Positions 18,439-41,661 of a stretch of 64,000 bases of DNA are shown piece by piece; the stretch's first letter is position 1, and every line of letters starts with the position of its first letter. Made by a program: the position numbers and the translations under genes. The DNA comes from Bacillus subtilis subsp. subtilis str. 168 (GTDB lineage Bacteria; Bacillota; Bacilli; Bacillales; Bacillaceae). Under the pieces are notes generated by a model. It had not been told where the DNA came from. It made no database searches and saw only the letters and a program-made list of their open reading frames with translations. The stretch covers positions 4,151,607 to 4,215,606 of the forward strand of contig NC_000964.3 in NCBI RefSeq assembly GCF_000009045.1, given 5' to 3'.

Positions 18439-19746
18439 ATGACAGAGGAGGTTTTCATCATGAGTCAAGAGCGCGTGAAACGGCCTGGGCATACCAGATG
18501 GTACATATCTTCGTTACTTAGCGGCATTATTATTCTTAATTATTTTGACCGAGTGGCCATCTCGGTAGCGGCCCCTGCGATACAAGATTCGTTTCACCTT
18601 ACTGCAACTGAACTCGGCATCGTGTTTTCCATTTACACCTATTCCTATACACTGATGCAGCTGCCTGTCGGAAGTTTGCTGGACCGTTTTGGGGTCGCAT
18701 GGGTCACGAGGGTTGGAATGACAATATGGAGCTTTTTAACGATCCTTCTTGCTTTTTTGCAAGGAAAATTGCTGTTGTATCTGTTCCGGTTTCTCATTGG
18801 GCTGACGAGCGCCTCTGCGTTCCCTGCTGCCTCTAAAGCAACCGCTCTCTGGTTTCCTCCAAGTGAGCGGGGATTGGCAAACTCACTGTTCGATTCGGCC
18901 GCCAAGTTTTCAAATGTAATCGGCGCGCCATTGGTCGCCTTTCTTGTCACAACATTTGACTGGCGTGTCGCTTTTTTGACGATTGGATGCATCAATGTGC
19001 TGTTTACGATCTTTTTCTGGCAGTATTATGAACAGCCTGAACGGCACAAACGCATTTCTAAAAGTGAACTAAACTATATTCAAAAACACAATGCCATTAC
19101 AACAGAGCAAATCCCTTACAAAACGGGCCCGCTTTTAAAAAAGCTTTTCACCAATCGAAAAGTATGGGGCTTAATGATCGGATTTACAGGGTACGGGTAT
19201 ACATTCAACCTGCTGCTCACCTGGCTTCCGACTTTCTTTAAACATACATACGGTATGGATCTCATGTCGTCCGGTTTATTTACGGCAGTGCCGTGGCTGA
19301 TCTCAACCATTTCCGGAATTGCCGTCGGCGGCTGGCTCGTCGATTATTTTATTAAGAAAGGCTATCCTAATACCAAGGTGTACCGAACCGTAATCATAGT
19401 CGGAATGAGCTTTGGCTTTTTCTTTTTAGGATCCATTCTGACGAACAATATTACCGTAGCCATTATTTGCATTTCCATCGGACTCGCCGGAATTTCCGCA
19501 ACCGCTCCGGTCGGCTGGTCCATCTCCGCAGAACTCGCGCCGATCGGTTCCGTATCCATGCTGAGCTCCATGGTGAATCTCGCAAACAACCTGTTCGGAG
19601 GCATTATTGCTGCGTCACTGACAGGGTATTTGTTTGATGTGACAGGCTCCTTTACCCTCAGCTTTCTGGTAGCTGGTTTTGTGCTGTTGCTGGGATTGGT
19701 TTTTTATGTGTTTGTATTAGGGGATGTAAAACGAATTAAACTATAG
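18439..19746 (+). CDS. yybO: MFS transporter, anion:cation symporter (ACS) family
   Basis: INYFDRVAISVA motif, WFPPSERGLA, ~12 TM; 435 aa from ATG 18439. Confidence 0.9.
   Translation: MTEEVFIMSQERVKRPGHTRWYISSLLSGIIILNYFDRVAISVAAPAIQDSFHLTATELGIVFSIYTYSYTLMQLPVGSLLDRFGVAWVTRVGMTIWSFLTILLAFLQGKLLLYLFRFLIGLTSASAFPAASKATALWFPPSERGLANSLFDSAAKFSNVIGAPLVAFLVTTFDWRVAFLTIGCINVLFTIFFWQYYEQPERHKRISKSELNYIQKHNAITTEQIPYKTGPLLKKLFTNRKVWGLMIGFTGYGYTFNLLLTWLPTFFKHTYGMDLMSSGLFTAVPWLISTISGIAVGGWLVDYFIKKGYPNTKVYRTVIIVGMSFGFFFLGSILTNNITVAIICISIGLAGISATAPVGWSISAELAPIGSVSMLSSMVNLANNLFGGIIAASLTGYLFDVTGSFTLSFLVAGFVLLLGLVFYVFVLGDVKRIKL
19514..19740 (+). repeat. yybO 3'-end repeat, copy 1 (within the intact gene)
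   Basis: Aligns to 20248-20475 and, for its last ~170 nt, to 25076-25240. Confidence 0.95.
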
Positions 19747-19789
19747 AACATGAAAAAGAGAGCTGCCAGTTGGCAGCTCTCCCTTTACA

Positions 19790-20029
19790 TCAAAGAATCG
19801 GCCCGTCCCCATTTACCTTCTCCTCGTCCTGTTCCTCTATATCAAGCCCCGAAGCTAGCATTTCCTGCTCTATCTGTTCGAGCACCTGCTCGTTTTTTCC
19901 TTGAAGACCACCTTCATAATGAAAAGCATCCTGTGTGCCGTTTTCCTCTATTGTCGCTAAAATATCGTGGATATCATTATGGTCTCCTGAAATGGAGCCG
20001 AATCCCTGGTTTTGTTTTTTATAATTCAC
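19790..20029 (-). pseudogene. Acidic ORF, probably the 3' remnant of a gene truncated at the 20073 junction
   Basis: Frame is open back to 20086 with no good RBS/start; [35 protein letters not shown] then an Asp/Glu-rich tail. Confidence 0.45.
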
Positions 20030-20073
20030 AAAACCGCTGGGGAGGTTGTTTCCGAGGTTTACACATGATGCGC

Positions 20074-20201
20074 TCCGAGTAGTAATTCATCAGTGTATCA
20101 AAATCTTCATTTTGGATTGCCACATCACATGCAGAGATGATGTCTTTCAATTGCTGTTCCAAATGAATTCCCCTAATCATCATGATTGGATATATTATAC
20201 A
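20074..20201 (-). pseudogene. Duplicate of the yybH upstream region and first 30 codons
   Basis: 128 bp colinear with 26451-26578; reads [30 protein letters not shown] then diverges and stops at 20019. Confidence 0.92.
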
Positions 20202-20247
20202 ATGTTTGACACGTAGGGATCCTTTTCATTTTTGTTTTTACGGTTTC

Positions 20248-20495
20248 GCTGGTCCATTTCCGCAGAGCTGGCGCCGATCGGTTCCGTATCCATGCTGAGC
20301 TCCATGGTAAATCTGGCAAACAACCTGTTCGAAGGCATTATTGCGGCTTCATTGACGGGGTATTTTGTTTGATGTGACAAGGCTCCTTTACGCTCAGCTT
20401 TCTGGTAGCCAGTTTTGTTCTGCTGCTTGGATTGGTTTTTTACGTGTTTGTCTTAGGGGATGTAAAACGAATTAAGCGGGAATAAAGAGTGCTTG
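20248..20495 (+). pseudogene. yybO 3'-end repeat, copy 2 (two 1-nt insertions)
   Basis: WSISAELAPIGSVSMLSSMVNLANNLF...GDVKRIKRE*; tail ggaataaagagtgcttg shared with copy 3. Confidence 0.95.
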
Positions 20496-21175
20496 TAGAG
20501 AAAACGTTGTTCTTTCTACAAGCTTTTTAGTTTTGTGCTGTTTTTCAAGATATTCAGCTGTCATAAAAAGAAAATGAGCTCCCACATACCGGCTAGGTAT
20601 GTGGCGTTCTTCTTCATGTTCTGGCATGCAGCTGTGAGGAGGATTTGTTTGCTCACCCCCTGAACCTGCGATAGCTAAGCCCGTGCAGTTGTTTTGAACC
20701 TACAAAGCTTCGTTCTATTTTTTCTTTTCTTTTTTTAGAGATTTCCTGAAATAGAAAAGCAATCTTTTCTAACCTTTTCTTTATGGTTTTGCCATACATA
20801 CCGAGTAACGACTTTCTGGCGTTTCGTTGATTTTGTGTAATATTCTCAAACATATTTCAGGATTTGATTTATATGACCGATAGTCTTTGCGATCAATTGT
20901 TGAGTACGTAAGTGTATGCTGATTCAACAAATGTATCTGTATTGTTCACTTTATAATGAAATTTCCATTTTGGAAGCAAACCCCTGACTGGGTGATAACG
21001 TCTATGTGCGATGGCACCAAAAACTTGGAGGTCAAATAGTCCTTTAGAGATGAGAGTTGTTAAGTAGCCGGAATCTAGAGCGACGGCTTCTACTTGAAAA
21101 TCAAATCATGCAATTTAGTGATCCAATCGGTCAAGGTAGGGCTTGGAACAGAATCATGGACTTTTCTGGAGTTGC
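20491..21175 (-). mobile_element. Degenerate IS1182-family transposase remnant
   Basis: Across frameshifts and stops the minus strand reads VHDSVP, FQVEAVALDSGYLTT, AHRRYHP.RGLLPKWKF, IERSF..SKQLHGL.Y.RFRG, ILLTAACQNMKK; end hairpin gcttgtagagaaaacgttgttctttctacaagc at 20491-20523. Confidence 0.85.
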
Positions 21176-21507: not shown

Positions 21508-21945
21508 ATGAATAAATTCCTGAAGAGCAATTTCCGTTTCCTTCTTGCGGCTGCTTTAGGCATATCATTACTTGCTAGTAGTAATTTTATAAAAGCCAGC
21601 AATGATAACTATAAATTCCATTTACTTGTACCTTATGGCTATGGTAATGCCTATTCAAATGATGCATTTAGACAGACCACTCATACAGATAATCCTTGGA
21701 AAGTAAATTTACAGAAATCGGCAGAAGGTAAAGGTACAATCATGACATTTTGGTTGATTAACACAGGGAATAGTAAAATTCCAAAAGCTTCTAAAATACA
21801 TAACGTAAAACAAGGAAGCGGAGCTCATTATTATCATGCAAATAGCCAGGGAAGCCATACATATGTAGCCTTAGCAGTTGAAAACAACAATTACAGTGCA
21901 AGTTCTTATGGTATAGATGGTGTATGGGATGAAGAAACTTGGTAA
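21508..21945 (+). CDS. yybN: Secreted protein YybN (DUF2712-like)
   Basis: 145 aa; Sec-type signal ([25 protein letters not shown]...IKA); gaaagga RBS; AT-rich. Confidence 0.85.
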
Positions 21946-22058
21946 ACAAGAACCTTCTAAAAACGTTGGCACCTTTTAGCCACGCGAAAAAATTTAGAAT
22001 GATAATCTTTTTATAAGATTATCATTTTTATTTATTCTATTAAGAATTGAGTGAGAAC

Positions 22059-22814
22059 ATGGAAAGTCATATTTATCGCATTATCAAAAATAAATTAACT
22101 ATAATAATATTTACTATAATCATATTAATTCCTTGTGTTGATATATCACTATTGTTAATGACTAACACAGAATACCATCCTGCATATGCGTTTTTCCTTT
22201 CTGGCACTTCCGTAGGGCATGCTTCACAAATGATCCTATTATGGTTTCTTCCGCTTTATTTTTTGTTACTATGTGCTGACGATTCTATACAAGATTATAA
22301 AACAGGATATCATTACATTCTTATAAGCAAAGTTGGCAGAAAAAAATATTGTTTGGAAAAAATATTTACCTCTTTTATCATTTCATTTTTGACAATGTTT
22401 TTGTCACTAATATTAAACTTTTTATTGGTTCAGGTTTTCTTTTTTAAAGGTACATTTAAAAATGACTTAGACCAAATTAAATTCCCTGATAACAGCCTTT
22501 ATACTTTTAGTATGGCCCATCCTTATATAGCAATTGTGTTATTTTCTATTATTTGTTGTATTATGTCTGGATTTGTTGGAGCACTTGGTTCAAGCCTCAG
22601 TTTACTTTTTCGTGATAAGAAGTATGCCTACCCAGCAAGTTTTTTTATTTGGTTCGTACTTATACTAAAAAACAAATCATTAATGTTTTTATTCCAACCG
22701 TTTACAGAATACGGTTATAATGTACTTCTCCCTATCCTATGTTTGTCTATCTTTATTTTTCTAATAATAATTTCTAGTATTGTTTTATATGAGGCAAAAT
22801 ACAATGAAAATTAA
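22059..22814 (+). CDS. yybM: Membrane protein (ABC permease-like)
   Basis: ~6 TM segments, [11 protein letters not shown] loop; AT-rich; likely start MESHIY. Confidence 0.82.
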
Positions 22815-23514
22815 AAGACTACTATTAATTTTATGTTTACTACTATTTTTAGTTACTTTATGGTTCAACCAGAACCACACTTATCTTGGAAAGAATTCTA
22901 TCGCGTCATTACTATATATGAATAATAGTACATTCGGATATAGTTCAATATTTGCATATACCTTGTTTTATATTGTCCCGTTTCTTATGTTACTTAGTAA
23001 CTTTTTTCATTCAGAAAACCCCTACAAAGTAATGAGGATGGTTAAGCGTAAAAATTACTACAAGTCTAAAATTATGGAGATTGGGTTTGTTTCTTTACTT
23101 TTTTCTTCAATACATACTGTTATTAATATTACGTGTACACATATTTTCTTTAGTAAAAACTTGTTGGTCGAAGCAAACTTTTTATCAATTTGTTTATTAA
23201 ACATGATTAGTTTAGTGTTTTTCTACTTATCAGTAGGTATTATGTTTAGACTTACATACGATCTGTTTAATTCAGTAGCATTAGCAATTTTTATTGTGTA
23301 TATAATTTTAGATAGCTTGTATTTCGGCGTTAAATTATTACTTCCTAATGGATATTGGGAACCCTTTAGAGACTTGGCTATATTCACAAATATGCTCAAT
23401 AGATATTGGTCAACTTCAAATCTTATAATAGTTTATATTAGACAGATAATAATAGTTTTTATTTTTTATTTAGTTGGATCTTCAATTTTTTTGAATAAGG
23501 ATTATAAAAAATGA
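22804..23514 (+). CDS. yybL: Membrane protein (ABC permease-like)
   Basis: MKIKRLL start overlaps the yybM end; ~6 TM. Confidence 0.82.
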
Positions 23515-24266
23515 GGATTAAAGGCTTTTTCATAACTTTAGTTGCGATAATATTTCAGGCGTCATTATCGAGTTATAATAATAATAAAAATGTCTTTCCT
23601 TTTTTAGATGGCATACCAATAAGCACCTCGGGTCATTATGAGTATCAAAATATTTTATTGTGGTTTGTACCTATTGTTTCCCTAAGTTTTTGTTTCTCTG
23701 GGAGTATTAGAGATACATACATTTCGTATGAGCAATTAAAGTTAGTAAGAGAACATAGTAGAGTTAAATGGGTAACATCTCAATTCTTAATAATTACAGT
23801 TGTACTTTTAATCTTTACTTTATCTCAGATTGCTATATTTTATATTTATTCACTTGTATCTCTTCATAACCTTGATATTAATTCCGTTATCAATAAAAGA
23901 TTTGTTATGATGACACTCATGTATTATCTAACCTTACTTAACTTATTTAGTTTTCAATTATTTATGGAGCTTTATTATAAATCTCAAATAGCACAATTAA
24001 ATATAAGCGTTTATATTATTTTTTCGTTAATTTTAGCAAAGAAGTTAGTGCAATTAAATTCTCCGAAAGTTATTCACTACTTTTTAATTCCAAACTACAG
24101 TAATGGATTAAGAACTGGGTTAAGCTATTATTCCCAATCTGGAACTGCTATTATTGAACCATTATTAGGTTTGTTTATTATAATCATTTTACAGATTTCA
24201 ATAGTTATATTATCTGTCTTAAAGTTCAAAAAAATAGATATGCTAAAAAGTGAGGGCTTACAATGA
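23511..24266 (+). CDS. yybK: Membrane protein (ABC permease-like, DUF2705-like)
   Basis: ATGA-type overlap with yybL; ~6 TM. Confidence 0.82.
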
Positions 24267-24919
24267 TTGAGGTATTAAACCTAACAAAAAAAATTAAAAA
24301 GACTACAGTTTTAGATAATATCTCTTATACATTTGAAAAAGGAACAATTTATGGACTATTTGGGAGTAATGGTTCTGGAAAGACCATGCTACTTCGTGCA
24401 TTATCCGGGTTAATAGTCCCTACTGAAGGGAGTATAACTATTAAAGGTGAACAATTACATAAAGATATCTCTTTTCCTAAAAGTGTAGGATTAATTATAG
24501 AAAATATGCAGTTACTTCCTCAGTATGATGCTTTTACTAACCTTAAAATTTTGTCAAAAATTAAAAAGATCGCATCAGATAATGATATATTAGATTCTAT
24601 TAGTAGAGTTGGTTTGGAAAATTTTAATAGTGTAAAGGTTAGTAAATTCTCGTTAGGAATGAAACAACGATTAAATATTGCACAGGCTATTTTTGAAAAA
24701 CCTGATATATTGCTACTTGATGAACCAACAAATGCGATTGATGAAAAAGGAGTTGCATTTGTTCATGACATTCTTTTACAAGAGAAAAAAAGGGGAGCTA
24801 CCATTATTATTACTAGTCATCACAAGGAAGATATTATATCTTTATGTGACATTGCATTAGAAATGAATCATGGACGTCTAGAAACTTCAGAAAAAGTAAT
24901 ATATAAGAAAGATAGTTAG
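24263..24919 (+). CDS. yybJ: ABC transporter ATP-binding protein
   Basis: Walker A GSNGSGKT, signature FSLGMKQR, Walker B LLLDEP, H-loop TSHH. Confidence 0.95.
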   Translation: MIEVLNLTKKIKKTTVLDNISYTFEKGTIYGLFGSNGSGKTMLLRALSGLIVPTEGSITIKGEQLHKDISFPKSVGLIIENMQLLPQYDAFTNLKILSKIKKIASDNDILDSISRVGLENFNSVKVSKFSLGMKQRLNIAQAIFEKPDILLLDEPTNAIDEKGVAFVHDILLQEKKRGATIIITSHHKEDIISLCDIALEMNHGRLETSEKVIYKKDS

Positions 24920-25075: not shown

Positions 25076-25258
25076 AAACCTGGCAAACAACCTGTTCGGA
25101 GGCATTATAGCTACTTCACTGACGGGATATTTATTTGATGTGACAGGCTCCTTACGCTCAGCTTTCTGGTGCCGGTTTTGTGTTGTTGCTGGGATTGGTT
25201 TTTTATGTGTTTGTATTAGGGGATGTAAAACGAATTAAACTGGAATAAAGAGTGCTTG
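25076..25258 (+). pseudogene. yybO 3'-end repeat, copy 3 (two 1-nt deletions), running into the terminator
   Basis: NLANNLFGGII...VLGDVKRIKLE*. Confidence 0.93.
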
Positions 25259-25276
25259 CTGAAAAGCACTCTTTTT
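25247..25276. terminator. Terminator between yybO copy 3 and yybI
   Basis: aaagagtgctt-gctgaa-aagcactcttttt. Confidence 0.85.
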
Positions 25277-25293
25277 CTGCATCGAAAGAATAC

Positions 25294-26082
25294 TTAAGAT
25301 AAGTCACTCCCAAAAATCGTAACAGTCTGACGGTTAAACATAAACCTCTGCCCGTTCCATTTTAATACGGTTTGAACATATCCCAATGAGTCGGCGTTAT
25401 ACCTTCCCGCTATCCGCTGGTACGCCAATAATTCGTATACGCCGTCTCTGTCAAAATCAACCGGATACAAGCCCGATAAAGGATTCACCCATCCTTCTAT
25501 CGGCATTTTTAACACACCTTGGCTGTTATAAATCTCATTCAAATATTCCCTGCCCTTGTAAGTAAGGTCGAGGATATACGTTTCGTTTTGCTGATGACTG
25601 ATAACGCTCGCTTTATATTGATTTTGATACCTCACACTGTACTTTAATTCATCATTCAATACATCTGAATTGAAAATTCGCCGGAACTGCCTGTTTAGAT
25701 AGGCAAACACATATGCATAAATAGCACCGCCGCTTCCCCCTGTGTCCATTACTACTGCCACATCCTCAATCTTGTCGCCTGTCATATCCCCCAGAAAAAG
25801 TGACGGATTGTATCCCATATTGTTTTGAAGCTGAATCCGCTGCTCCTGATGGGTTCTGCCATCACGGATCACCAATGTGATATTTCTCCATAACGGGCTG
25901 CCGGGCATTTGATTTCCAGTTAGAAAGACCTCGTCAATAACGCCGTCTCCCGTTACATCGCCGCGGGTAGATACAATGATTGCACGTGAGGAGACAGGCT
26001 GCCGAAATACGTATGGATGTTGAACAAGTCCTCTGCCTTCATAAAACCAATAAGGAGCCATTCTGATGTCATACACATTCAA
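25294..26082 (-). CDS. yybI: Spore coat-associated protein with DxxGDG(VCBS-like) repeats
   Basis: TTG start after gggaagg; GDVTGDGVID, GDMTGDKIED, VDFDRDGVYE; sigma-E-like -10 catataat at 26116-26123. Confidence 0.85.
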   Translation of the reverse strand: MNVYDIRMAPYWFYEGRGLVQHPYVFRQPVSSRAIIVSTRGDVTGDGVIDEVFLTGNQMPGSPLWRNITLVIRDGRTHQEQRIQLQNNMGYNPSLFLGDMTGDKIEDVAVVMDTGGSGGAIYAYVFAYLNRQFRRIFNSDVLNDELKYSVRYQNQYKASVISHQQNETYILDLTYKGREYLNEIYNSQGVLKMPIEGWVNPLSGLYPVDFDRDGVYELLAYQRIAGRYNADSLGYVQTVLKWNGQRFMFNRQTVTIFGSDLS

Positions 26083-26149
26083 TTGTGTCACCTTCCCTAA
26101 TCAGCTGAATGAATCATTATATGCAGGAATGGCACATCAAAGACATATC

Positions 26150-26539
26150 TTACACACCAATTAAATCCGTACCATATGAATTATCAATTACACAAAGCCA
26201 CTCGCCTTGCGCATTCTTTTTAAATACATAGGTCGCCCTTCTTTCCATCGCATACTCGGAGTCCTTTTTATCCGAATCAAGCAGTGTCTGAGAAAGAACG
26301 AGTACCGTGTCACCTGCTTCCAACAGGATCATTTTCCCTTGTGTCGGGACAATATGATGATTGAAATAGTTCGCAATCGTGATAAACGCTTTTTTGATTT
26401 CTTCCTTGCCTCGCGCGATCATGCCCGGCTTCACAACTAAAACGGCATCTTCCGAATAATAATTCATCAGTGTATCAAAATCTTCATTTTGGATTGCCAA
26501 ATCACACGCAGAGATGATGTCTTTCAATTGCTGTTCCAA
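26150..26539 (-). CDS. yybH: SnoaL/NTF2-like protein (DUF4440)
   Basis: 129 aa from TTG 26539; [18 protein letters not shown]. Confidence 0.85.
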
Positions 26540-26684
26540 ATGAATTCCCCCAATCATCATGATTGGATATATTATACATCGCTAGACCACTGAAACCTTG
26601 AAAACAAAATGAAAAGTATCCTTTTTTCCTATATAATCAAATAGATATATTTAACAAAGTACCCAAGTGAAGGGGTGAACATTA

Positions 26685-27524
26685 TTGTCTGCGGAAGTAA
26701 CGTTACATGACAATATACATTATGATTTAAGTGCGGATTGCCAGCACTGTTTTGGCCTGTGCTGTGTCGCCTTGCCTTATGCGAAGTCGGCAGATTTTGC
26801 TTTTGATAAAGACGGGGGCACGCCTTGCCGCAACTTACAATCAAACTATCAATGTTCTATACATAAAGATCTCAGAGAAAAAGGATTTCGAGGCTGCTCT
26901 GCATATGAATGCTTTGGCGCCGGCCAAAAAGTATCCCAAATCACTTATGAGGGAAAGGATTGGCGAAACAGCCCCGAAACGGCCAACCAGATGTTTGACG
27001 TTTTTCCTATCATGCAGCAGCTGCACGAAATGCTCTGGTATTTACATGAAGCTCTTTCTATAGATATAGCCAAGCCGATTCATTCTGAACTGAGAACCAC
27101 TTTCGAAAAAATAGAAAGGCTCACCAGACTCAGCAAAGAACGCTTGCTGACACTGCAGGTGGACGAGCATCGAGCTGAGGTCAATGAATGGCTGTTAAAA
27201 ACAAGTGAACTGGTGCGTGCCCAAGCCCGCCATCCAAAACTCCCGAAAAAGGTCAGCCGGGGAAGTGTCCTGATCGGCGCGAAACTGAAAGGGCTTGATC
27301 TGCGAGGAGCAAATCTAAGAGGGGCGCTGCTCATAGCCGCCGATCTGAGAAATGCCGATTTGAGAATGACAGACTTTATCGGTGCAGATATGAGAGACGC
27401 TGATCTCAGCGGCGCCGACCTGACCGGGAGCATCTTTTTGACACAGGCACAGGTGAACGCCGCCAACGGCGATTCGAATACAAAGCTGCCGCTGTCTGTA
27501 CGAACCCCTGCCCATTGGAAATAA
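26685..27524 (+). CDS. yybG: Cys-rich N-terminus plus C-terminal pentapeptide repeats
   Basis: DCQHCFGLCC...C...C.IH...GC..YEC; LKGLDLRGANLRGALLIAADLRNADLRMTDFIGADMRDADLSGADL. Confidence 0.88.
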   Translation: MSAEVTLHDNIHYDLSADCQHCFGLCCVALPYAKSADFAFDKDGGTPCRNLQSNYQCSIHKDLREKGFRGCSAYECFGAGQKVSQITYEGKDWRNSPETANQMFDVFPIMQQLHEMLWYLHEALSIDIAKPIHSELRTTFEKIERLTRLSKERLLTLQVDEHRAEVNEWLLKTSELVRAQARHPKLPKKVSRGSVLIGAKLKGLDLRGANLRGALLIAADLRNADLRMTDFIGADMRDADLSGADLTGSIFLTQAQVNAANGDSNTKLPLSVRTPAHWK

Positions 27525-27556
27525 AAAAGGACCCGCTAACGGTCCTTTTTTACTGA

Positions 27557-28771: not shown

Positions 28772-28957
28772 CGGGACTTTATCGGTCCCTCATCATGTTG
28801 TGGAGCACTGCCATTCATAAACAATCATCCTTTATTTCTTACGAATTCAAACATCCTCGAGTCTGTTTATATTATTATCTTAGCACCGTTGATATATGTT
28901 GTATAATGCATATAAAATATCCTTTTCATGCTTATATGTAATAAGGAGAGATGATAA

Positions 28958-30855: not shown

Positions 30856-30879
30856 ATAGAAAAGGAGTGAGCCTGACAC

Positions 30880-30987: not shown

Positions 30988-31029
30988 TCACCATGCTGGA
31001 GATTTTTCAGCTTATGTTTTTCACTTCCA

Positions 31030-31692: not shown

Positions 31693-31838
31693 GCAAACCA
31701 TCTCCTGTGGAAATTTTTTGATAGTTTTAAAGAAAACAGAAGTGAACGGACTATTTTCACCCACGCTCGAGCTGACTGGATTCTTGAGAGGAAACGCCGA
31801 TTTTCGCCAGCATCAGCTCAACTTGTTAACGTTGTCCA

Positions 31839-32291: not shown

Positions 32292-32410
32292 TCCTAAAAC
32301 CCCTCACGTATTTTTGTTGCAATTACAACAAAAATGTTTTAACCTTACTATTATAAGACCACATGCGTGCTGTACAGTCCAGACTAATATCAGAAAAGGA
32401 TTGATTCATA

Positions 32411-32857: not shown

Positions 32858-33459
32858 AATATATGTATTACGGAATAGGCATACTCATATTAAGTTTGGG
32901 CATTTCCTTAACCATACAATCAGGACTGGGCACATCACCCTTCGATGCCCTTTTGGTTGGTCTGTCAAAAAAAATCGGTCTTACCGTAGGAAGCTGGGAG
33001 GTCCTTATTTCTGTGATCCTCTTAATCTGCAACGCTATATTAACGAGAAAAAAACCTATTTTGCTGGGCTTGATTACAGCATTCATTACTGGAATAGGCA
33101 TTGACCTATGGTTGTTTGTTGTAAAAAACACCATCTATCTAAACTCGTTGTTAAGCAAACTGATTTGTTTTGGAATTGGTTTGGTGCTCATCGGTCTTGG
33201 AACAGCCATCTATCTTCAGACGAAATTCGCATCAACACCGATCGATCATTTAACACTTATTATCCGAGATCTCTCCAAAAGAACAATATTGTTTTCAAGG
33301 ACATTGGTATACGCTCTTTTCTTAGTATTAGCCATCATCTTTAAAGGCCCTATCGGCATCGGAACTCTTTTAACGGTTTGTTTGGGAGGAATGCTCCTTC
33401 ACGTTTTTATGCCTATTGTGGAAAGACATTTCTTATCAAAGAATAGAAGAGGTTATTAA
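32854..33459 (+). CDS. yyaS: YczE/YyaS/YitT-family membrane protein
   Basis: GLGTSPFDAL, GPIGIGTLL; overlaps the yyaT stop. Confidence 0.85.
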   Translation: MKYMYYGIGILILSLGISLTIQSGLGTSPFDALLVGLSKKIGLTVGSWEVLISVILLICNAILTRKKPILLGLITAFITGIGIDLWLFVVKNTIYLNSLLSKLICFGIGLVLIGLGTAIYLQTKFASTPIDHLTLIIRDLSKRTILFSRTLVYALFLVLAIIFKGPIGIGTLLTVCLGGMLLHVFMPIVERHFLSKNRRGY

Positions 33460-33553
33460 GAAACCTCTTCTCGATCCAAAAAACGAAACGCAAAACAAGC
33501 CCCGTTTCGTTGTCAATTCTTTATCTCTGGTACTGTTGAGGTTTTATAATCAA

Positions 33554-34075
33554 TTAAAATTTATAGTACCAAAAAATCGCAATTTCATTTGCTGTTGGAA
33601 AGTTGGAATAAAGCATCGTATCAACCGCACCTATTATAAAGTGATGTTTGGCATAAAAATGACAAGCTGAAATATTAATATCTTGGGTTTCAAGCATAAG
33701 ACCACAAAAATGATTCTCCTTTGCCCACTCAATCGCTTTATGTAATAATGCTGTTCCAACACCTTTTTTTCTATAGTCTTTTGCCACGGCAATGTCCTCT
33801 ATTAGTGCATACCCATTCCAGTTAGAACGGATCTTAATCCGGCCAATGCAGTTGTTTTCAAGATAATATAAAAAAGCCGCTTTCCCCTCTTCTTCAACAT
33901 AACTAACATCCATGTCATCATCTTCATATTGTTTAAAATAAGGTTTAGAAAATCGTTCCTCAGTATATGTCCAAACACCGTTTTCAAAAGCAGGTATCAT
34001 TCTCCCAAAAACAACGAAAGGTTCGTTTGGTTTATTGAAATCTTTCATATTCAAATGAGTCATTTTCATGATCAT
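33554..34075 (-). CDS. satA: Streptothricin acetyltransferase SatA (GNAT)
   Basis: 173 aa; IEDIAVAKDYRKKGVG, LMLETQDINISACHFYAK, SAT-family pattern. Confidence 0.85.
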   Translation of the reverse strand: MIMKMTHLNMKDFNKPNEPFVVFGRMIPAFENGVWTYTEERFSKPYFKQYEDDDMDVSYVEEEGKAAFLYYLENNCIGRIKIRSNWNGYALIEDIAVAKDYRKKGVGTALLHKAIEWAKENHFCGLMLETQDINISACHFYAKHHFIIGAVDTMLYSNFPTANEIAIFWYYKF

Positions 34076-34262
34076 ATCAATCTCCGCCAATCGAGATAAT
34101 ATTTAGTAAACTCGTTTCGATACTATTCAACAACAGCTTCCAAAAGTGTACTCTTTAAGAGAACAGCATTAGATAAGGCATCCATTACCTTATATATTTC
34201 ACTATCTTAATGAGGTATTTCAACAGAGGCTTGTGGTACAGTAAAAAGGAATAGAAACAAGA

Positions 34263-34375
34263 GAAAAGAAGATGAACCTATGCCCACTAACAATAAACTC
34301 AATGAGAAATATCATACTTCCTTCAACTCGCCCACAACCCTGTTGACTAGTATCCGTGGAGAGAGGAAGCTTTGA
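34263..34375 (+). pseudogene. yyaL 5'-end repeat, copy A (most degenerate)
   Basis: agaagatgaacctATGcccactaacaataaactcaat[~12-nt gap]gagaaat...cgcccacaaccctgttgactagt..ccgtggagagaggaagctttga aligns to 39578-39702. Confidence 0.85.
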
Positions 34376-34485
34376 CACAGCTTCTGCCATTGATGACATC
34401 TCTATTGAAGTATCCAAAGGACAACCAAGGATCGCTCTTTGACTTTTTCAAGAAGAAAGTAGAGTGAATAAAGGAGTGATTGAGT

Positions 34486-34842
34486 ATGTTAACAAGAGAA
34501 GATATCTTTAAACACGTCAAAGAAAAATACGGTACATCGCCTGATTACCCGTGGGAGAAATACCCAAACTATGCTTCTTTGAGACATACATCAAACAAAA
34601 AATGGTACGGTCTTATCATGAATGTTCTCCCAGAAAAATTAGGCTTGGATGGTCATGGCGAAATAGATATTCTAAATCTAAAATGTCCCCCTGAAATAAG
34701 TGATCGCTTAAGAAACGGGGAAAATATCTTACCCGGATATCATATGGATAAGGAACATTGGATTTCAATTGTTTTAGAACGGACAGATCCAGAAGGCGAA
34801 ATCTATAACTTAATCGAGCAGAGCTTTCATTTAACCAAGTGA
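34486..34842 (+). CDS. yyaQ: MmcQ/YjbR-family protein
   Basis: KKWYGLI, ILNLKCPP, ILPGYHMDKEHWIS. Confidence 0.88.
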   Translation: MLTREDIFKHVKEKYGTSPDYPWEKYPNYASLRHTSNKKWYGLIMNVLPEKLGLDGHGEIDILNLKCPPEISDRLRNGENILPGYHMDKEHWISIVLERTDPEGEIYNLIEQSFHLTK

Positions 34843-35001
34843 AGATAAAGAGTGTTCCTGCTAATCAAGCTGCGAAGAGTAGTGGGCACTTTCATTTTAG
34901 GATACTGTTCTTCACTCTGTCCACAAACGCAACTTAGTTCATCTGGTGCGAGAGTGGGAGAAGAATTTCAACCAACTTCTTATGTAAAAGGATGAATAGT
35001 T

Positions 35002-35568
35002 ATGACAAATAACTTAAAACAGAGAAGAATCATTTTAGATTTAGCAGTTACTTTAGATGGTTTTATTGAAGGGAAAAATGGAGAAGTTGATTGGTGTATT
35101 ATGGACCCTGATATGGGGTTTACTGATTTTTTAAATCAAATTGATACTATTTTATATGGTAGAAAAAGCTTCGATTTATGGGGACAATACATTCCAAAAA
35201 ATGAAGACCCTGATACAGAAAAGGAACTTTGGAAATTGGTTCATAGTAAAAAGAAATATGTTTTTTCCAGAACACAAAATGAGATTGATAATCAAGCCAT
35301 ATTTATAAATGATAATATTCTTGAAGAAGTAAATAAATTGAAGAAAAATCCTGGTAAAGACATCTGGCTATATGGTGGAGCGAGTCTCATTACAACTTTT
35401 ATAAATTTGGGGCTTGTTGATGAATTTAGATTATCTATTCACCCTGTTGTTTTGGGAGAAGGAAAACCGTTGTTTATTGATGTAAAACAGAGGATAAATT
35501 TAAAAATGGTGAATACAAGAACATTTTCCTCTGGCGTTGTGCAAATCGTTTATCATTGGAATGGCTAA
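35002..35568 (+). CDS. yyaP: Dihydrofolate reductase / RibD C-terminal family protein
   Basis: LAVTLDGFIEG, ILYGRKSF, DIWLYGGASL, HPVVLGEGKPLF. Confidence 0.9.
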   Translation: MTNNLKQRRIILDLAVTLDGFIEGKNGEVDWCIMDPDMGFTDFLNQIDTILYGRKSFDLWGQYIPKNEDPDTEKELWKLVHSKKKYVFSRTQNEIDNQAIFINDNILEEVNKLKKNPGKDIWLYGGASLITTFINLGLVDEFRLSIHPVVLGEGKPLFIDVKQRINLKMVNTRTFSSGVVQIVYHWNG

Positions 35569-35795
35569 CATTGTAAAGTAACACTCGACAGTAATCCTTC
35601 TTATTGAACTAAAGGGGAATCCATAAATAATGGGTTCCCCTTAATATACTATGGAATTATCAATATCAAATTTTCTGTAATAAAAGAGGATTGAAAAGGA
35701 CGATGTCTCCTCAATTAACATCATTAAGCATTATAGTATATTTTCTTCTCCCTCTTTTAAGTAATCGGCTAAGTTTTGTATTTATAAAAAAACGA

Positions 35796-35972
35796 AAGAA
35801 GGTGATCCAATGCCTACTAACAATAAACCCAATAGATTAATCGCTGAGAAATCTACTTATTTTACTTCAACATGCTCATAACCCTGTGGACTGGTTCCCT
35901 TGGGGAGAAGAAGCATATGAAAAAGCGAAACGCGAAAACAAGCCTGTTCTCGTATCTATTGGGTATAGCTAA
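35796..35972 (+). pseudogene. yyaL 5'-end repeat, copy B (+1 frameshift)
   Basis: aagaaggtgatcc ATG(35810) [52 protein letters not shown]. Confidence 0.93.
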
Positions 35973-36023
35973 CGATGGCTAATCTAAAGAACATGCTATT
36001 GATGCCATGTTTATTCATTTTAC

Positions 36024-36067
36024 AAAAAAGGATCAACCTTGAATTACTTTCACAAGATTGATCCTTT
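36024..36067 (-). terminator. Terminator after tet(L)
   Basis: aaaggatcaaccttg...caagattgatccttt stem. Confidence 0.75.
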
Positions 36068-36074
36068 CACTCAT

Positions 36075-37451
36075 TTAGCCATGTCTCCGCGAACGTTTAT
36101 ATACATTCAAGATTACTAGCCAACAAATAACAATGATTCCTGCAAAAAGTATGAGCATATTGCTATACAAATAGGTAGAGTGATCAACGTCAATAGGCAG
36201 CAGCCTATGATCTAGGAAGCCGATAGATAATAAACCGCCTACAATCGCAATACCCGTTCCCTCTGATAAAAAGCTCGTGAAATTAAGCAAACTCATTCCA
36301 GCGCCCGCTTCCTTTTCTTTCAAACTGCTAGACACAACTGTAGATATAACTGTTTTTGTGAAAGATAGCCCCCCAAAAACAAAAATTACTATAATTGTCA
36401 TGATCCATGGTGCTGCATCTATAAAAAAGGCAGCGATTAAAAAGCCGGAAGAAAGCAATGCACTTCCAATAGTTAGTACATACAAGGAACCTTTCCGATC
36501 AACAAGCAATCCCCCAATGTAACCAAAGATGATGACACTCATTGTTCCGGGGAAAATAATGCCGCTTCCAATTGCTGCAGTACTTAAATGGTGAACATCT
36601 TTCATCATGTAAGGAACCATAGAGACAAATCCTGCTACTGTACCAAATATTAGTCCTCCGCAAAGGGTTCCAATCACAAAAAAGACGTTTTTCCCTAATT
36701 CAGGGTCAACAAAAGGGTCCTGAGCTTTCCTAATGTGTTGCACAAATATGAAGAAAGCAAGGATACTGATGATCAGAAAAGAAAATCTATAAGATGTTGT
36801 AAACAGCATAAAAAATACGATACCTGCAGACATCAATATAATCCCTGCCATATCAATGTGTCCTCTTATTCTCTCTTCCTTTTTCAACAATTTTATAAGG
36901 AATGGAACGGTGATAATTGTTGCAGTTGGAATAAGCAGCAAATACGACCAATGGATATAATGAGCAACCATTCCGCCAATAGCTGGCCCAACACCTTCTC
37001 CCATTGCTACCAGGGACCCGATCAGGCCAAATGCTTTCCCCCTGTTCTCTTTTGGAATATAGCGCGCAACGACAACCATCACAAGAGCTGGGAATGCGGC
37101 TGCACCAATTCCTTGAATAAATCGGGCTAGAATGAGAATAGGAAAGAAAGAGTGTCCAACAAATCCAATGATCGACCCTAAGCCATTTACCATAATCCCA
37201 AATAGAAGCAGATTTTTGATGCCCAGCTGGTCTGATAGCTTTCCATATAGAGCTGTTCCAATGGAGAAGGTTAACATAAAGGCTGTATTCACCCAGTTTG
37301 CACTTGCTGGCAGTTTATTAAACTCGTTGGCAATATCAGGTAATGAGACGTTCAGAACCATTTCATTTAATACGCTGAAAAATGATAGAACACAAAGCCA
37401 AATCAAAACTTGATTGTGCCGTAAAGTTGACTGTGAATAAGACGTATTCAC
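36075..37451 (-). CDS. tetB: Tet(L) tetracycline-metal/H+ antiporter, 14-TMS MFS
   Basis: 458 aa; [35 protein letters not shown]; GTG start. Confidence 0.97.
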
Positions 37452-37484
37452 AATTTCCCCTCCATTAATGAGGGCAGACGCAGT

Positions 37485-37547
37485 TTATAGGGTCATTGAT
37501 ACGCTTCCCTCTTTTAATTGTACCCTGTTCATTTTATTGCACTTCAT
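37485..37547 (-). CDS. tetL: tet(L) leader peptide (translational attenuation), 20 aa
   Basis: MKCNKMNRVQLKEGSVSMTL* after a strong RBS, 33 nt upstream of the tetB start. Confidence 0.88.
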   Translation of the reverse strand: MKCNKMNRVQLKEGSVSMTL

Positions 37548-37785
37548 AATAACTCCCCCTACATTTGATTGATATGATCTTATTATATATAGACTAAGGA
37601 TTAAACTTTTACTTTTTTTATAAAAATTTGACCAGATTGCGAAACAAGGAAAAACGTTATTCGCATTTATCTCAAGTGGCAAAATGAAACATTAGTTTAT
37701 ATTTTCACATCACAATTATCGATAAGCAGTCAGTTATTGTATTTGTTTAGGATAACTGTGGTAACCTGAATATAACCAACTTAGG

Positions 37786-37977
37786 AAGAAGGTGATCCCA
37801 TGCCAAATAAAAGTAAACCCAATAGATTAATCGCTGAAAAGTCTCCTTATTTACTCCAACACGCCCACAACCCTGTGGACTGGTTCCCGTGGGGAGAAGA
37901 AGCATTTGCAAAAGCAAAACGCGAAAACAAGCCGGTTCTGGTCAGCATCGGTTATTCGACGACTTGTCATTGGTGGC
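37786..37977 (+). repeat. yyaL 5'-end repeat, copy C (near-identical)
   Basis: 9 substitutions plus a 3-nt gac duplication over ~172 coding nt by manual alignment; homology ends at cattggtg. Confidence 0.97.
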
Positions 37978-38039
37978 CTGGGATAATCAAATCGTGTGGA
38001 ACTCCATTAAAAGATAACAGAAGCCATTTTAAACGATAA
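37800..38039 (+). CDS. yyaO: Truncated yyaL paralogue, 79 aa (chimeric tail)
   Basis: First ~58 aa match YyaL, then an unrelated tail; has RBS and a downstream terminator. Confidence 0.7.
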
Positions 38040-38165: not shown

Positions 38166-38189
38166 AACTTTAATTAAATGAGAGGGATG

Positions 38190-38606
38190 ATGTTGTTGTA
38201 TTCCATTAGTAAAGCTGCTGAGAAGACTAGTATTAGTTCGTATACATTAAGATATTACGAAAAGATTGGGTTACTTCCACCACCAAAACGAAAAAACAGT
38301 GGAAGGCGTTTTTATACGGAGACTGATATTCAGTTCATGTTATTCCTGAAAAGTTTAAAGGAAACAGGTATGTCTTTGGAGGATATTAATGAGTTTGTCA
38401 AAGACGGATGCATTTTGGAAAAAATCAATTCGGATGTTAAATCGGCACAACTCTCCCCATCTATAAATAAACGTATTGAGATTTTAACCAAGCACTTAGA
38501 GAAAATGGAAATTAAAAAAAGGGAGCTGGAAGAAGTGATTTCTACTACAAAAGGAAAACTGGATACATATTATTCAATTTTGAAAGAGGAAGTGGAAAAC
38601 AAATGA
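38190..38606 (+). CDS. yyaN: MerR-family regulator
   Basis: YSISKAAEKTSISSYTLRYYEKIGLL, RFYTETDI. Confidence 0.92.
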   Translation: MLLYSISKAAEKTSISSYTLRYYEKIGLLPPPKRKNSGRRFYTETDIQFMLFLKSLKETGMSLEDINEFVKDGCILEKINSDVKSAQLSPSINKRIEILTKHLEKMEIKKRELEEVISTTKGKLDTYYSILKEEVENK

Positions 38607-39520
38607 AACATTTAAATATATACATAATGTTACTTGGCTTCTCTATTTTCACGGGAGCTACTTTTAATCTTGCAAAATATACAGTTGGATATTTTTCTCC
38701 ATCGTCTTCTGCGGCATGGCGTTTCGGTTTAGCGGCTGCAGTGATGCTCATCATTTTGATTTTTACTGAAGGTATAAAGAAGAGTCAATTACGGAAAAAC
38801 GCCGTTTCATACATTGTTCTTGGAATTATAGGAATCTTTGGATTTAATGCCTTGTTTTTTGTTGGTTTAAAATATACATCTCCCGTTAACGGAGCATTAA
38901 TAATGGGGCTGAATCCTTTATTAACAGCAATTCTCGCTCGAATTATCTTAAAGGACAACATGACAAAAAAACAAGTACTCGGCATATTCTTTGCATTCAT
39001 CGGTGTATTGTTAGTCATTACACAAGGTTCTATCGAAACCATTAAAACCTTATCAATTTCAGGAGGAGACTTAATAATCTTTACAGGTAACGTTTGTTGG
39101 GCACTTTATGGCGTACTTGGACGTCGGTTTGTAAAGGATGGTACACCGCTATCTACAACCACTTATACGATGGTTATTGGTGCTGTTAGTTTAATAGTAG
39201 TTTCCTTATTTACATCCAAACCTGTTTCTTTATCGAACATCCCGATTGGAGTTTGGGGGGCAATTGCTTTTATGGCTTTTTTTACAAGTGTTTTGGGTTA
39301 CCTATGGTGGAATCAGGGGATTAAAGAGATTGGAGCTAGTAAAACATCTTTATTTTTCAACCTTGTTCCCGTTGTAACGATGATTATTTCATTTGCCGTT
39401 GGAACACCAATAAAGGTATTTCAAGTTATTGGGGCTGTGCTAGTTATATTAGGCGTTTTAACCGCTTCGGGGGTAATACGTATTCCTAAGTACAATACTA
39501 AAGAACAGTCAGCTATATAA
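38603..39520 (+). CDS. yyaM: EamA/DMT-family exporter
   Basis: 305 aa, 10 TM, two EamA repeats; ATGA overlap with yyaN. Confidence 0.9.
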   Translation: MKHLNIYIMLLGFSIFTGATFNLAKYTVGYFSPSSSAAWRFGLAAAVMLIILIFTEGIKKSQLRKNAVSYIVLGIIGIFGFNALFFVGLKYTSPVNGALIMGLNPLLTAILARIILKDNMTKKQVLGIFFAFIGVLLVITQGSIETIKTLSISGGDLIIFTGNVCWALYGVLGRRFVKDGTPLSTTTYTMVIGAVSLIVVSLFTSKPVSLSNIPIGVWGAIAFMAFFTSVLGYLWWNQGIKEIGASKTSLFFNLVPVVTMIISFAVGTPIKVFQVIGAVLVILGVLTASGVIRIPKYNTKEQSAI

Positions 39521-39591
39521 AGAAATAGGGAGTATTTTTGAGAAAATGTGTTAAGTTAAATATACACTAATTATAGGAAGAAGGTGATCCC

Positions 39592-41661
39592 ATGCCAAAC
39601 AAAAGTAAACCCAATAGATTAATCAATGAGAAATCACCATATTTACTCCAACACGCCCACAACCCTGTGGACTGGTTCCCGTGGGGAGAAGAAGCTTTTG
39701 AAAAAGCAAAACGCGAAAACAAGCCGGTTCTGGTCAGCATCGGTTATTCGACTTGTCATTGGTGCCACGTGATGGCCCACGAAAGCTTTGAAGACGAAGA
39801 AATCGCGCGTCTTCTCAATGAACGGTTTGTGGCGATTAAAGTCGACCGGGAAGAGCGGCCTGATGTGGATTCTGTTTATATGAGAATCTGCCAGCTGATG
39901 ACCGGGCAGGGCGGCTGGCCGCTGAATGTGTTTATCACGCCTGATCAAAAGCCGTTTTACGCGGGTACATATTTTCCAAAGACGAGCAAATTCAATCGTC
40001 CCGGTTTTGTTGATGTGCTTGAGCATCTGTCTGAGACGTTTGCGAACGACCGCGAGCATGTCGAGGATATTGCGGAGAACGCCGCTAAACATTTGCAGAC
40101 CAAAACAGCTGCAAAAACTGGTGAGGGCCTTAGCGAATCAGCGATTCACCGGACATTCCAGCAGCTTGCCAGCGGGTTTGACACGATCTACGGCGGTTTC
40201 GGGCAGGCACCGAAATTTCCAATGCCTCATATGCTGATGTATTTGCTACGTTATGATCACAATACAGGGCAGGAGAACGCTCTATACAACGTGACGAAAA
40301 CATTGGACAGCATGGCGAATGGCGGCATTTACGATCATATCGGCTATGGGTTCGCCCGCTATTCGACCGATGACGAGTGGCTCGTTCCCCACTTTGAAAA
40401 AATGCTGTACGACAATGCGCTGCTGCTGACCGCTTATACAGAAGCCTATCAGGTCACGCAAAACAGCCGCTATAAAGAGATTTGTGAGCAGATCATTACG
40501 TTCATTCAGAGGGAAATGACTCATGAAGACGGAAGCTTTTTCTCGGCTTTGGACGCGGACACAGAAGGAGAAGAAGGAAAGTACTACGTGTGGTCAAAGG
40601 AAGAGATTCTAAAAACGCTCGGGGACGATCTCGGAACGCTGTATTGCCAAGTGTATGACATCACTGAAGAAGGAAACTTTGAAGGCAAAAATATTCCTAA
40701 CCTCATTCACACAAAGCGAGAACAAATCAAAGAGGATGCCGGGTTAACCGAAAAAGAGCTCAGTCTCAAACTCGAAGACGCAAGACAGCAGCTCTTGAAG
40801 ACACGCGAGGAAAGAACCTATCCGCATGTCGATGATAAAGTGCTTACCTCATGGAACGCGCTGATGATCGCGGGTCTTGCGAAAGCGGCAAAGGTATACC
40901 AGGAGCCGAAATATCTCAGCCTAGCGAAAGACGCCATCACATTTATTGAAAACAAATTAATCATCGACGGCCGTGTGATGGTCCGATATCGTGATGGCGA
41001 AGTGAAAAACAAAGGCTTTATCGACGATTACGCTTTTCTCCTATGGGCTTATCTGGATCTCTATGAAGCTTCGTTTGATCTTTCTTATTTACAAAAAGCG
41101 AAGAAACTGACAGACGATATGATCAGCTTATTTTGGGATGAGGAGCATGGCGGATTCTACTTCACCGGACACGATGCAGAAGCCTTAATCGTACGGGAAA
41201 AAGAAGTGTACGACGGCGCCGTGCCTTCAGGAAACAGTGTGGCAGCTGTTCAGCTGCTGCGTCTCGGGCAAGTCACAGGCGACTTATCACTGATCGAAAA
41301 AGCGGAAACAATGTTTTCCGTGTTCAAGCCAGACATAGAAGCGTATCCGAGCGGCCATGCTTTCTTTATGCAAAGTGTGTTAAGGCATCTGATGCCTAAA
41401 AAAGAAATCGTGATTTTTGGCAGCGCAGACGATCCAGCCAGAAAACAAATTATAGCGGAGCTTCAAAAAGCCTTTAAGCCCAACGACTCCATTCTGGTGG
41501 CAGAGCAGCCCGAGCAATGCAAAGACATTGCGCCATTTGCAGCAGACTACCGCATCATAGACGGCAAAACAACCGTTTATATTTGTGAAAACTTCGCCTG
41601 CCAGCAACCGACAACAAATATTGAAGAAGCGATCCACACATTAATAAGCAGCAGGGATTAA
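39592..41661 (+). CDS. yyaL: Thioredoxin-like (DUF255) plus six-hairpin glycosidase-like protein (SPATA20/SSP411 family)
   Basis: 689 aa; [36 protein letters not shown]. Confidence 0.92.

Follow-up and report, generated by a model that had tools for sequence, protein, structure and literature searches.

Arrays of gene fragments at yyaL and yybO in Bacillus subtilis 168: probable remnants of serine-recombinase elements at one locus and of separate insertions with target duplication at the other

The arrays of gene fragments that lie beside yyaL and yybO in Bacillus subtilis recall several described systems. Staphylococcal cassette chromosome elements (SCC, including SCCmec) are moved by large serine recombinases (Ccr) at a fixed site in the 3' end of the origin-proximal gene rlmH (orfX), with repeats of about 15 bp; they accumulate as tandem cassettes, many of them without recombinase genes, and carry resistance cargo. 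The SXT/R391 elements of Gammaproteobacteria, conjugative elements of about 100 kb with a tyrosine integrase, enter the 5' end of prfC and supply it with a promoter and 5' coding sequence. In Firmicutes, ICESt1-type elements at fda and integrative and mobilizable elements accrete in tandem and decay to cis-mobilizable elements, or CIMEs (PMC5704250; CIME accretion is also credited to Pavlovic et al. 2004, as cited there), and elements moved by serine recombinases as a rule disrupt the gene that they enter and leave behind only very short repeats (PMC5704250). Insertion with long target duplication was described by the Kobayashi group for restriction-modification genes, most cases being in naturally competent species (PMC2853133), and PMC5595907 describes gene-intervening elements of spore formers with large serine recombinases, such as skin in sigK, SPbeta in spsM and gin in gerE. 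We consider here how the two arrays compare with these systems, in a stretch of 64,000 nucleotides of strain 168 (NC_000964.3, positions 4,151,607 to 4,215,606; hereafter the window), the gene content of which is that of the B. subtilis yyb/yya region.

Using blastn and alignments, we confirmed the two families of repeats that the original prediction, made from the letters of the window, had placed at 19514-39763: the last ~230 nt of yybO are repeated twice downstream of that gene, and the start of yyaL (ribosome-binding site, RBS, and first ~170 nt) is repeated three times upstream of the intact gene, with blastn E-values across the copies of both arrays ranging from 3e-17 to 8e-88. It is also true of both arrays, as had been proposed, that the intact gene stands at the edge, that the extra copies are damaged and that a displaced copy of the gene end brackets each insert. 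The G+C content between copies is 27-36% in both arrays, against 44-48% in the flanks, and ~9 kb of ordinary genes (25242-34230) lie between them. The reading that we prefer, with a probability of roughly 0.65, is that yyaL is a hotspot holding the remnants of serine-recombinase elements and that the yybO array results from separate insertions with target duplication.

All array features below lie on the plus strand unless the minus strand is given, coordinates are those of the window, and a vertical bar marks the break point. The intact yyaL gene (39592-41661), encoding a thioredoxin-domain (DUF255) protein, forms the right edge of the second array. The leftmost fragment, copy A (34232-34392), comprises a -10-like motif, an RBS and what is left of the 5' coding sequence, up to CTGCCATT|GATG; it is strongly decayed (84% identity to the yyaL start over 76 nt, with a 13-nt gap, ~34256-34392) and is followed by a first cassette (34480-35568) with yyaQ (YjbR-like) and yyaP (RibD_C-like reductase). 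Copy B (35786-35990) is homologous over 35796-35953 (86% to the yyaL start, E 3e-48, with insertions of 1 nt and ~21 nt); it carries a decayed insertion of a type-1 P arm, that is, an arm of an element attachment site (attP), GGCTAATCTAAAGAACATGCTATT|GATGCCATGT, and also a type-1-like right flank. The second cassette (36024-37605, minus strand) holds the tet(L) efflux gene (36075-37451; NCBIfam Tet(L), 971 bits) and its leader. Copy C (37754-37975), which is the 79-amino-acid (aa) open reading frame (ORF) at 37800-38039 known as 'yyaO', is 91% identical to the yyaL start over 224 nt (E 2e-83), and 94% over the fragment up to the core, and ends at TTGTCATT|GGTGGCCTGGGAT, a type-3 left end. After the third cassette (38178-39520), with the MerR regulator yyaN and the EamA transporter yyaM, comes the 5' segment now joined to yyaL (39547-39760; -10-like motif, RBS, codons 1-56), which, judging from the mosaic identities and the motif search given below, probably came in with that cassette. 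Two other readings were rejected: the tet cassette is not a simple Campbell insert of a plasmid, as pBC16-type tet(L) plasmids match the window (80% identity) over 36024-37605 only and the yyaL fragments fall outside the match, and the array is not an integron, there being no IntI or other tyrosine integrase in the region, no inverted repeats of at least 40 nt, and boundaries made of gene fragments instead of attC hairpins.

The break point of the array is fixed. In every aligned copy the homology begins at GAAAGAAGGTGATCC-ATG, and in all of them (six species) it ends at, or no more than ~15 nt past, TGYCATT|GGTG; these ends were found in B. subtilis, B. tequilensis, B. atrophaeus, B. swezeyi and B. 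licheniformis and also in skin-element copies of other B. subtilis strains. The sequence codes for the CxxC motif, the surrounding codons being T-C-H-W-C-H-V, and in the window the putative chromosomal attachment site (attB) core, ACTTGTCATT|GGTGCCACGT (39751-39770), is the break point common to all fragment copies. The yyaL core thus presents the fixed attB within a gene that is expected of elements with large serine recombinases, and the window cassettes retain it (CATT|GRTG), without recombinases and with arms not recognisable as attP halves. A -10-like motif, TGTGnTAnnnT, lies 10-35 nt 5' of the RBS at copies A and C and at the resident yyaL (a variable-gap search gave three hits in the window for none expected) and occurs 5' of fragment copies in four other species; a fixed-spacing version of the search gave no match, and a generic sigma-70 scan gave no enrichment (25 sites against 19.8 +/- 4.5). 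The original prediction had both arrays grow without a dedicated recombinase, through RecA- or homology-facilitated integration of circles or transforming DNA bearing a gene-end fragment, so that the gene served as a reusable landing pad. We regard this as unlikely, since it leaves unexplained why every independent yyaL cassette, across six species, shows the same ~15-nt break.

The yyaL array is an insertion hotspot across the genus Bacillus, with cargo that is unrelated between species. Identical YyaL proteins gave one context by identical-protein look-up, and the same array was present in each of the 24 contigs read. B. tequilensis has a beta-lactamase-type and a two-component cassette bracketed by two fragments, one fragment accompanies a two-component cassette in B. 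atrophaeus, at least three fragments are present in B. swezeyi, and in B. licheniformis two bracket a CNNM/MerR cassette and a cassette with MbnB, a major facilitator superfamily (MFS) transporter and a second threonyl-tRNA synthetase (ThrRS); B. velezensis has an intact yyaL and, as its sole fragment trace, a 51-nt reversed remnant. No counterpart of the window cassette genes (yyaQ-yyaP, tet(L), yyaN-yyaM) was found in the arrays of the other species examined, and the end types of the cassettes recur across species. A search with the 79-aa fragment ORF matched 2101 short proteins; these include fragment ORFs that complete-genome annotations list for at least 16 named Bacillus species of the subtilis, licheniformis and pumilus clades, and several close YyaL homologs are annotated with a length of 625-629 aa, the gene being split at the same place. 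A scan of species-representative genomes with YyaL gave, among the matches listed, only distant homologs of at most 56% identity. The yyaL fragment had no match in the phage collection, and its sole plasmid matches were full-length yyaL homologs of Paenibacillus and distant taxa; two viral-contig matches to the RBS motif were dismissed as chance, being in high-G+C phages. Our literature search found no paper on yyaL as an insertion site, nor any text tying the fragment repeats to the tet amplification described in older reports.

Fragments of the yyaL 5' end are also found far from yyaL, in the skin element beside spoIVCA of B. subtilis strains (loci L085-L088, ~400-14200 in locus coordinates), where they bracket two cassettes, one with alcohol dehydrogenase (ADH), old yellow enzyme, TetR and ketoacyl synthase genes and one with yqcK, arsR, TetR and ADH genes. 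The block formed there by the ketoacyl synthase gene and a fragment is 89% identical to a block upstream of B. tequilensis yyaL. The B. licheniformis ThrRS cassette (L104, 12546-17455), with an MbnB/TglH-family gene, an MFS transporter gene and a second threonyl-tRNA-synthetase-like gene, is missing in a second locus of that species (L105) and could be a natural-product or self-resistance module.

A recombinase was found in one of these arrays. In two strains of B. swezeyi, the ~7-kb cassette next to yyaL encodes an SBF transporter, a protein of 494 or 503 aa, VanZ, DUF4467 and an ImmA-like M78 peptidase, and the 494-aa protein (L090, 7766-9250) has the Resolvase, Recombinase and Zn_ribbon domains of a large serine recombinase. 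Its closest solved relative in the PDB is SPbeta SprA/YokA (end-to-end alignment, E 1.5e-26), and it is ~30% identical to SPbeta-type phage integrases. When the left side of the gene-side junction of this element was joined to the right side of the far junction, the rebuilt attP, TAGTTTGGTTATTCTAATGCACATGCCATT|GGTGCCATGTCTATTAAAATAACCATAAAT, had dyad symmetry at 19/26 positions, against 9/26 for the hybrid junctions as found; its outer arm scored 12/16, a value that 7 of 20,000 shuffles attained in one run and 9 in another, these shuffle counts, like the one that follows, being simple controls and not probabilities. Such an arrangement is what would be expected of an integrated element with a serine integrase. 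A second arm type, GTAGCTATACGCACATG ... CATGTTCGTATAGCTAC, was rebuilt from the ends of one recombinase-less skin-element cassette in some B. subtilis strains and is symmetric at 16/26 positions (reached by 18 of 20,000 shuffles). A third left-end type, GGTGGCYTRGGAT, is common to the yyaN-yyaM cassette of the window and the B. atrophaeus cassette, both of which adjoin an intact yyaL. The ~21-nt insertion of window copy B recurs in the yyaL-joined fragment of B. swezeyi, B. tequilensis and B. licheniformis, and it reads as the outer part of a P arm; yyaL is split in these three species because the insertion holds an in-frame TAG. Neither the end types with halves forming inverted repeats, which recur, nor the presence of a serine recombinase in the gene-proximal element is explained by capture through homology, which can point for its part to the lack of any recombinase gene in the Pfam tables for 8439-51661 of the window. 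With the element proteins as tblastn queries, no recombinase remnant was detected in the window or in the other loci, and an exact search of metagenomes for the type-1 arm gave no match. At yyaL, the alternative that the original prediction itself had named, a recombinase acting in trans, fits better.

In B. velezensis (L083, 8062-8948), yyaL and an EamA gene are preceded by genes for a helix-turn-helix (HTH) protein and an ImmA-like M78 peptidase, and this peptidase shares 67.5% identity with its counterpart at the right end of the recombinase element in B. swezeyi. The similarity suggests that the HTH/M78 pair is the remnant of an old element of which no direct fragment copy is left.

Compared with the described systems, yyaL resembles CIME accretion in that, on the preferred reading, integration is at a gene site, the integration genes are lost and the next element enters a reconstituted site, giving a decayed array with the intact gene at its edge. 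The known cases, however, mostly involve tyrosine integrases, gene 3' ends or tRNA genes, and short repeats, whereas yyaL combines a large serine recombinase with a target within the 5' part of a protein gene and with ~190 nt of gene start and a promoter-like motif in each unit. With SCC it shares a large serine recombinase, a fixed site in an origin-proximal gene of housekeeping type, tandem cassettes, many of them recombinase-less, and resistance cargo; it differs in that its target is the 5' part of the gene and that the closest solved relative of its recombinase is SprA of SPbeta, and it falls outside the definition of SCC. As in SXT/R391, integration would be in the 5' coding part and a replacement promoter and 5' sequence would keep the gene functional, but SXT/R391 has a tyrosine integrase, is conjugative and forms no arrays of small cassettes. 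The gene-intervening elements share the host genus, a large serine recombinase and a position within a protein-coding gene, and some are small and not prophage-like; they differ in that the gene is simply split and is rebuilt by excision in sporulation, and they are not known to carry a replacement fragment or to form arrays.

The 5' segment of yyaL has an ancestry of its own. Between B. subtilis and B. tequilensis the gene body after the core is 93% identical and the 5' segment before it 83%, whereas the values are 78% and 93% between B. subtilis and B. atrophaeus and 73% and 90% between B. tequilensis and B. swezeyi; the 5' segments resident in B. tequilensis and B. swezeyi match window copy B at 89-90% identity. 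The resident 5' segment departs from the species tree and therefore travels with mobile DNA. Stronger constraint on the N-terminus could inflate some of the 5' identities, but it is no answer for the pair B. subtilis and B. tequilensis, because there the 5' segment is less conserved than its own gene body. These relationships also bear on a different history, in which both arrays began as local tandem duplications or amplifications and the interior was later replaced piecemeal by acquired DNA. This is the least probable of the alternatives: the yyaL copies fall in clades shared across species (copy B groups with the segments now joined to yyaL in B. tequilensis and B. swezeyi), the cargo is wholly unrelated between cassettes and bears no trace of a duplicated interior, and dyad-symmetric split arms would not be expected. 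What speaks for local duplication comes from yybO, where the junction before copy 2 is built from neighbouring sequence, namely a copy of the yybH start and an inverted spacer, and the copies cluster by identity.

Homologous recombination between fragment copies is a real, secondary process at yyaL. The B. licheniformis locus L105 is without the ThrRS cassette of L104, and its fragment is a hybrid whose parents switch within the first ~59 nt; this is a homologous crossover and not a site-specific one. What sets L090 apart from L091, the second B. swezeyi locus, is exactly one ABC-3C defence cassette and one fragment, with the crossover in the 14-nt block CATTGGTGCCATGT, and this pair has no power to separate the mechanisms, because the block is the longest identical stretch of copies that are ~75% identical. 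The ABC-3C-type cassette itself (L090, 1711-6345), which is precisely missing in the other strain, encodes HNH-CTD11, MC6/MC7 and AAA_23-DUF2326 proteins. Recombinase-free capture draws support from the B. licheniformis crossover, from the position of the B. swezeyi one and from the published insertions with long target duplication, which have no mobility gene and occur mostly in competent species (PMC2853133). Such capture would account for the spread and loss of cassettes but not for the first joining of unrelated cargo to a yyaL fragment.

The scheme that we propose under the preferred reading is as follows. Codons 54-60 of yyaL (ACWTGYCATT|GGTGCCAYGT) would be the chromosomal attachment site of a family of small integrative elements that depend on large serine recombinases for their movement. 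Each element would bear at its gene-side end a yyaL start of its own, made up of the -10-like motif, the RBS and ~170 coding nucleotides. Integration would push the previous yyaL start upstream as a dead fragment and fuse the copy brought by the element to the gene body, and repeated integration at the same core would build an array with the newest element beside the gene. Most elements would then lose their recombinase and arms, leaving the cargo cassettes, and the fragment repeats would later serve homologous recombination, by which cassettes are deleted or reshuffled. In this scheme the B. swezeyi recombinase probably catalyses integration at the yyaL core, as its place in the gene-proximal element and the rebuilt site suggest, and the window would hold three remnants, yyaQ-yyaP, tet(L) and yyaN-yyaM, which we infer arrived by the same route as the B. 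swezeyi element and then decayed.

The yybO array has a different composition. The intact gene (18439-19746; NCBIfam MFS hits), encoding an MFS transporter, forms its left edge; identical 435-aa YybO proteins gave one context by identical-protein look-up and the same context in all 24 contigs read. The gene-attached copy of the 3' end (19514-19746) is followed by a non-native terminator hairpin (19758-19781), then by an open frame of ~94 codons (19790-20073, minus strand), for which none of the fetched loci offers a homolog and which appears to be what is left of the 3' part of some gene, by a copy of the yybH promoter and first 37 codons (20074-20201, minus strand; 96% identical to 26451-26578) and, at the junction to copy 2, by an inverted copy (20217-20254, no strand assigned) of the yybH-yybG spacer (26585-26621; 84% over 38 nt in reverse orientation). 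The 500 nt between yybO and copy 2 thus hold these four pieces and are not foreign cargo; the yybH-like piece was rejected as a full paralog, the match spanning 37 codons only. Copy 2 (20248-20496; 91% over 228 nt at 20248-20475, E 8e-88, two 1-nt insertions) has two frameshifts and then half of the native terminator. It is abutted directly by the remnant of an insertion sequence (IS) transposase gene of the IS1182 family (20491-21166; 79.5% identical to the IS1182 transposase on B. subtilis plasmids), a candidate mobility-related gene of the insert. The yybN-yybJ island (21508-24919; 27% G+C) encodes a DUF2712 protein, WxPxxD- and DUF2705-family membrane proteins and an ABC-transporter ATPase. 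Copy 3 (25077-25275; 92% over 167 nt at 25077-25241, E 6e-64, two 1-nt deletions) is short by 62 nt at its left end and keeps the native terminator.

Each of the eight loci of relatives examined, from two species, has one copy only. In those of B. spizizenii (L093, L094) and B. atrophaeus (L095, L096, L098) there is a single yybO 3' end, without the yybN-J island and without yybH or yybG. The terminator native to these relatives matches the sequence past copies 2 and 3 and not that past the gene-attached copy, and copy 3 is probably the original chromosomal end because of this. The three copies are 90-93% identical to one another and 83-86% to B. spizizenii, which marks them as in-lineage paralogs. 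In the downstream copies the left boundaries are 62 nt apart (19514 against 19576 of the gene) and the right ends differ too; we found no fixed or common core, no recombinase, no recurrence in the relatives examined, no integrase or integrase remnant in the region, and no yybO fragment among the plasmid matches listed. The array agrees with insertion with long target duplication, with duplications of 229 and 165 nt at differing boundaries and relatives that are single-copy. As in the published cases, there are direct duplications of tens to hundreds of bp, variable in length, and a single copy at the empty site; the differences are that the cargo of yybO is an ABC-transporter island with an IS remnant, together with a local rearrangement, and that the fixed-boundary yyaL array is unsuited to this model. 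We therefore picture two separate insertions at yybO with long variable target duplication, which amount to Campbell-type insertions, both within the B. subtilis lineage: one would have brought the foreign low-G+C ABC-transporter island and the IS1182 remnant, the other would be a local rearrangement with a copy of the yybH start. Variable boundaries of this kind would also be expected of recombinase-free capture; against that account, the B. spizizenii and B. atrophaeus loci do not show the yybO pattern.

Two further observations concern the same loci. The 3' region of yybO (19514-19742) is 83-86% identical to that of B. spizizenii L093 and the rest of the gene 93%, and gene conversion among the three copies could be behind this lower similarity. 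The genes yybH and yybG (pentapeptide-repeat protein; 26150-27524 in the window) are missing from the B. spizizenii and B. atrophaeus loci, where yybI runs directly into yybF or other genes, a further insertion or deletion.

Several points weigh against the preferred reading. One is a competing account of yybO, in which its array too would be the remnant of site-specific islands at the yybO 3' end whose integrase, for example a tyrosine integrase, has been lost, so that both loci would follow a shared conventional logic. In its favour, the array is laid out as integration at a 3' end with a replacement end would leave it, and the island has a very low G+C content (27%) and a transposase remnant; we nevertheless hold this account to be improbable, somewhat more so than recombinase-free capture, as the downstream copies start 62 nt apart and end differently, with no common core, the region yielded neither an integrase nor a remnant of one, most of the first insert is local DNA and the relatives examined have one copy. 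The yybO comparison covered two other species only. At yyaL, the three cassettes of the window rebuild no symmetric attP (6-14/26, the best at ~0.05), and four further cassettes likewise gave no symmetric site. The recombinase was seen in one species only (two strains); searches of phage, plasmid, viral-contig and metagenome sequences gave no relatives of it apart from phage and plasmid proteins of at most 35% identity, and its link to the site has no independent replicate. The units are flanked by fragment copies of ~190 nt, not by the short direct repeats of serine-recombinase elements. In the recombinase-type elements the fragment holds an in-frame stop, so that the gene is not restored, and the preferred reading does not account for a ~190-nt gene fragment that these elements carry and themselves interrupt. 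Finally, both pairs of occupied and empty strains can be accounted for by recombination at the longest identical block and give no proof of site-specific exchange.

Two claims of the original prediction have accordingly to be given up. Capture at yyaL cannot be called integrase-free, given the fixed core in six species, the B. swezeyi serine recombinase and the dyad-symmetric attP sites rebuilt from the ends of that element and of a second cassette, and a cognate integrase with a fixed core is what that prediction had itself named as incompatible with it. Nor do the two loci follow one logic, since at yybO the boundaries vary, the copies are paralogs that arose within the lineage, local DNA makes up one junction and B. 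spizizenii and B. atrophaeus have a single copy. A conserved motif at the repeat ends, of the kind that it had proposed to look for, exists at yyaL as the fixed break point (CATT|GGTG) and is lacking at yybO; the homologous recombination that it invoked does occur, as the crossover inside the B. licheniformis fragment attests, as a secondary process that does not account for the fixed yyaL break point.

Two features of the neighbourhood belong to neither array. Left of the yyaL array, YyaR (33554-34090, minus strand) matches the Sat4 streptothricin acetyltransferase family with E 1.6e-56, under the curated cut-off of the family. A 300-nt direct repeat (29946-30245 and 32507-32806, 73% identity) corresponds to two paralogous GNAT acetyltransferase genes (ORFs 29850-30293 and 32411-32857).

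A bolder version of the yyaL scheme, which we offer tentatively and think less likely than not to hold in full, is that in the clades of B. subtilis, B. licheniformis and B. pumilus the yyaL start acts as a cassette platform that renews itself. Elements with serine recombinases would enter at the CxxC codons, a type-3 subset such as yyaN-yyaM would restore both gene and site with a faithful promoter and 5' segment, leaving the site open to repeated use, and recombinase-less cassettes (tet(L), ABC-3C, signalling) would be moved in trans or by transformation, with the fragment as homology arm. If this is true, Bacillus would have in the platform its own counterpart of SCC, distinguished by a restoration of the target gene that is undescribed for serine-recombinase elements.

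The comparison of the two loci is also a caution that look-alike repeat architectures 9 kb apart can differ in origin. The findings account for oddities of strain 168, namely why it has a 79-aa 'yyaO' ORF, why tet(L) lies where it does on the chromosome and why small unrelated operons stand side by side upstream of yyaL, and for the N-terminally truncated YyaL annotations of 625-629 aa in several species. If the recombinase and the rebuilt attP work as we infer, they would provide a new serine-integrase landing-pad pair for Bacillus engineering. The findings also bear on pangenome analysis and on the tracking of resistance genes in food and probiotic Bacillus strains, as yyaL is an origin-near hotspot that gathers resistance and anti-phage defence cassettes across many Bacillus species.

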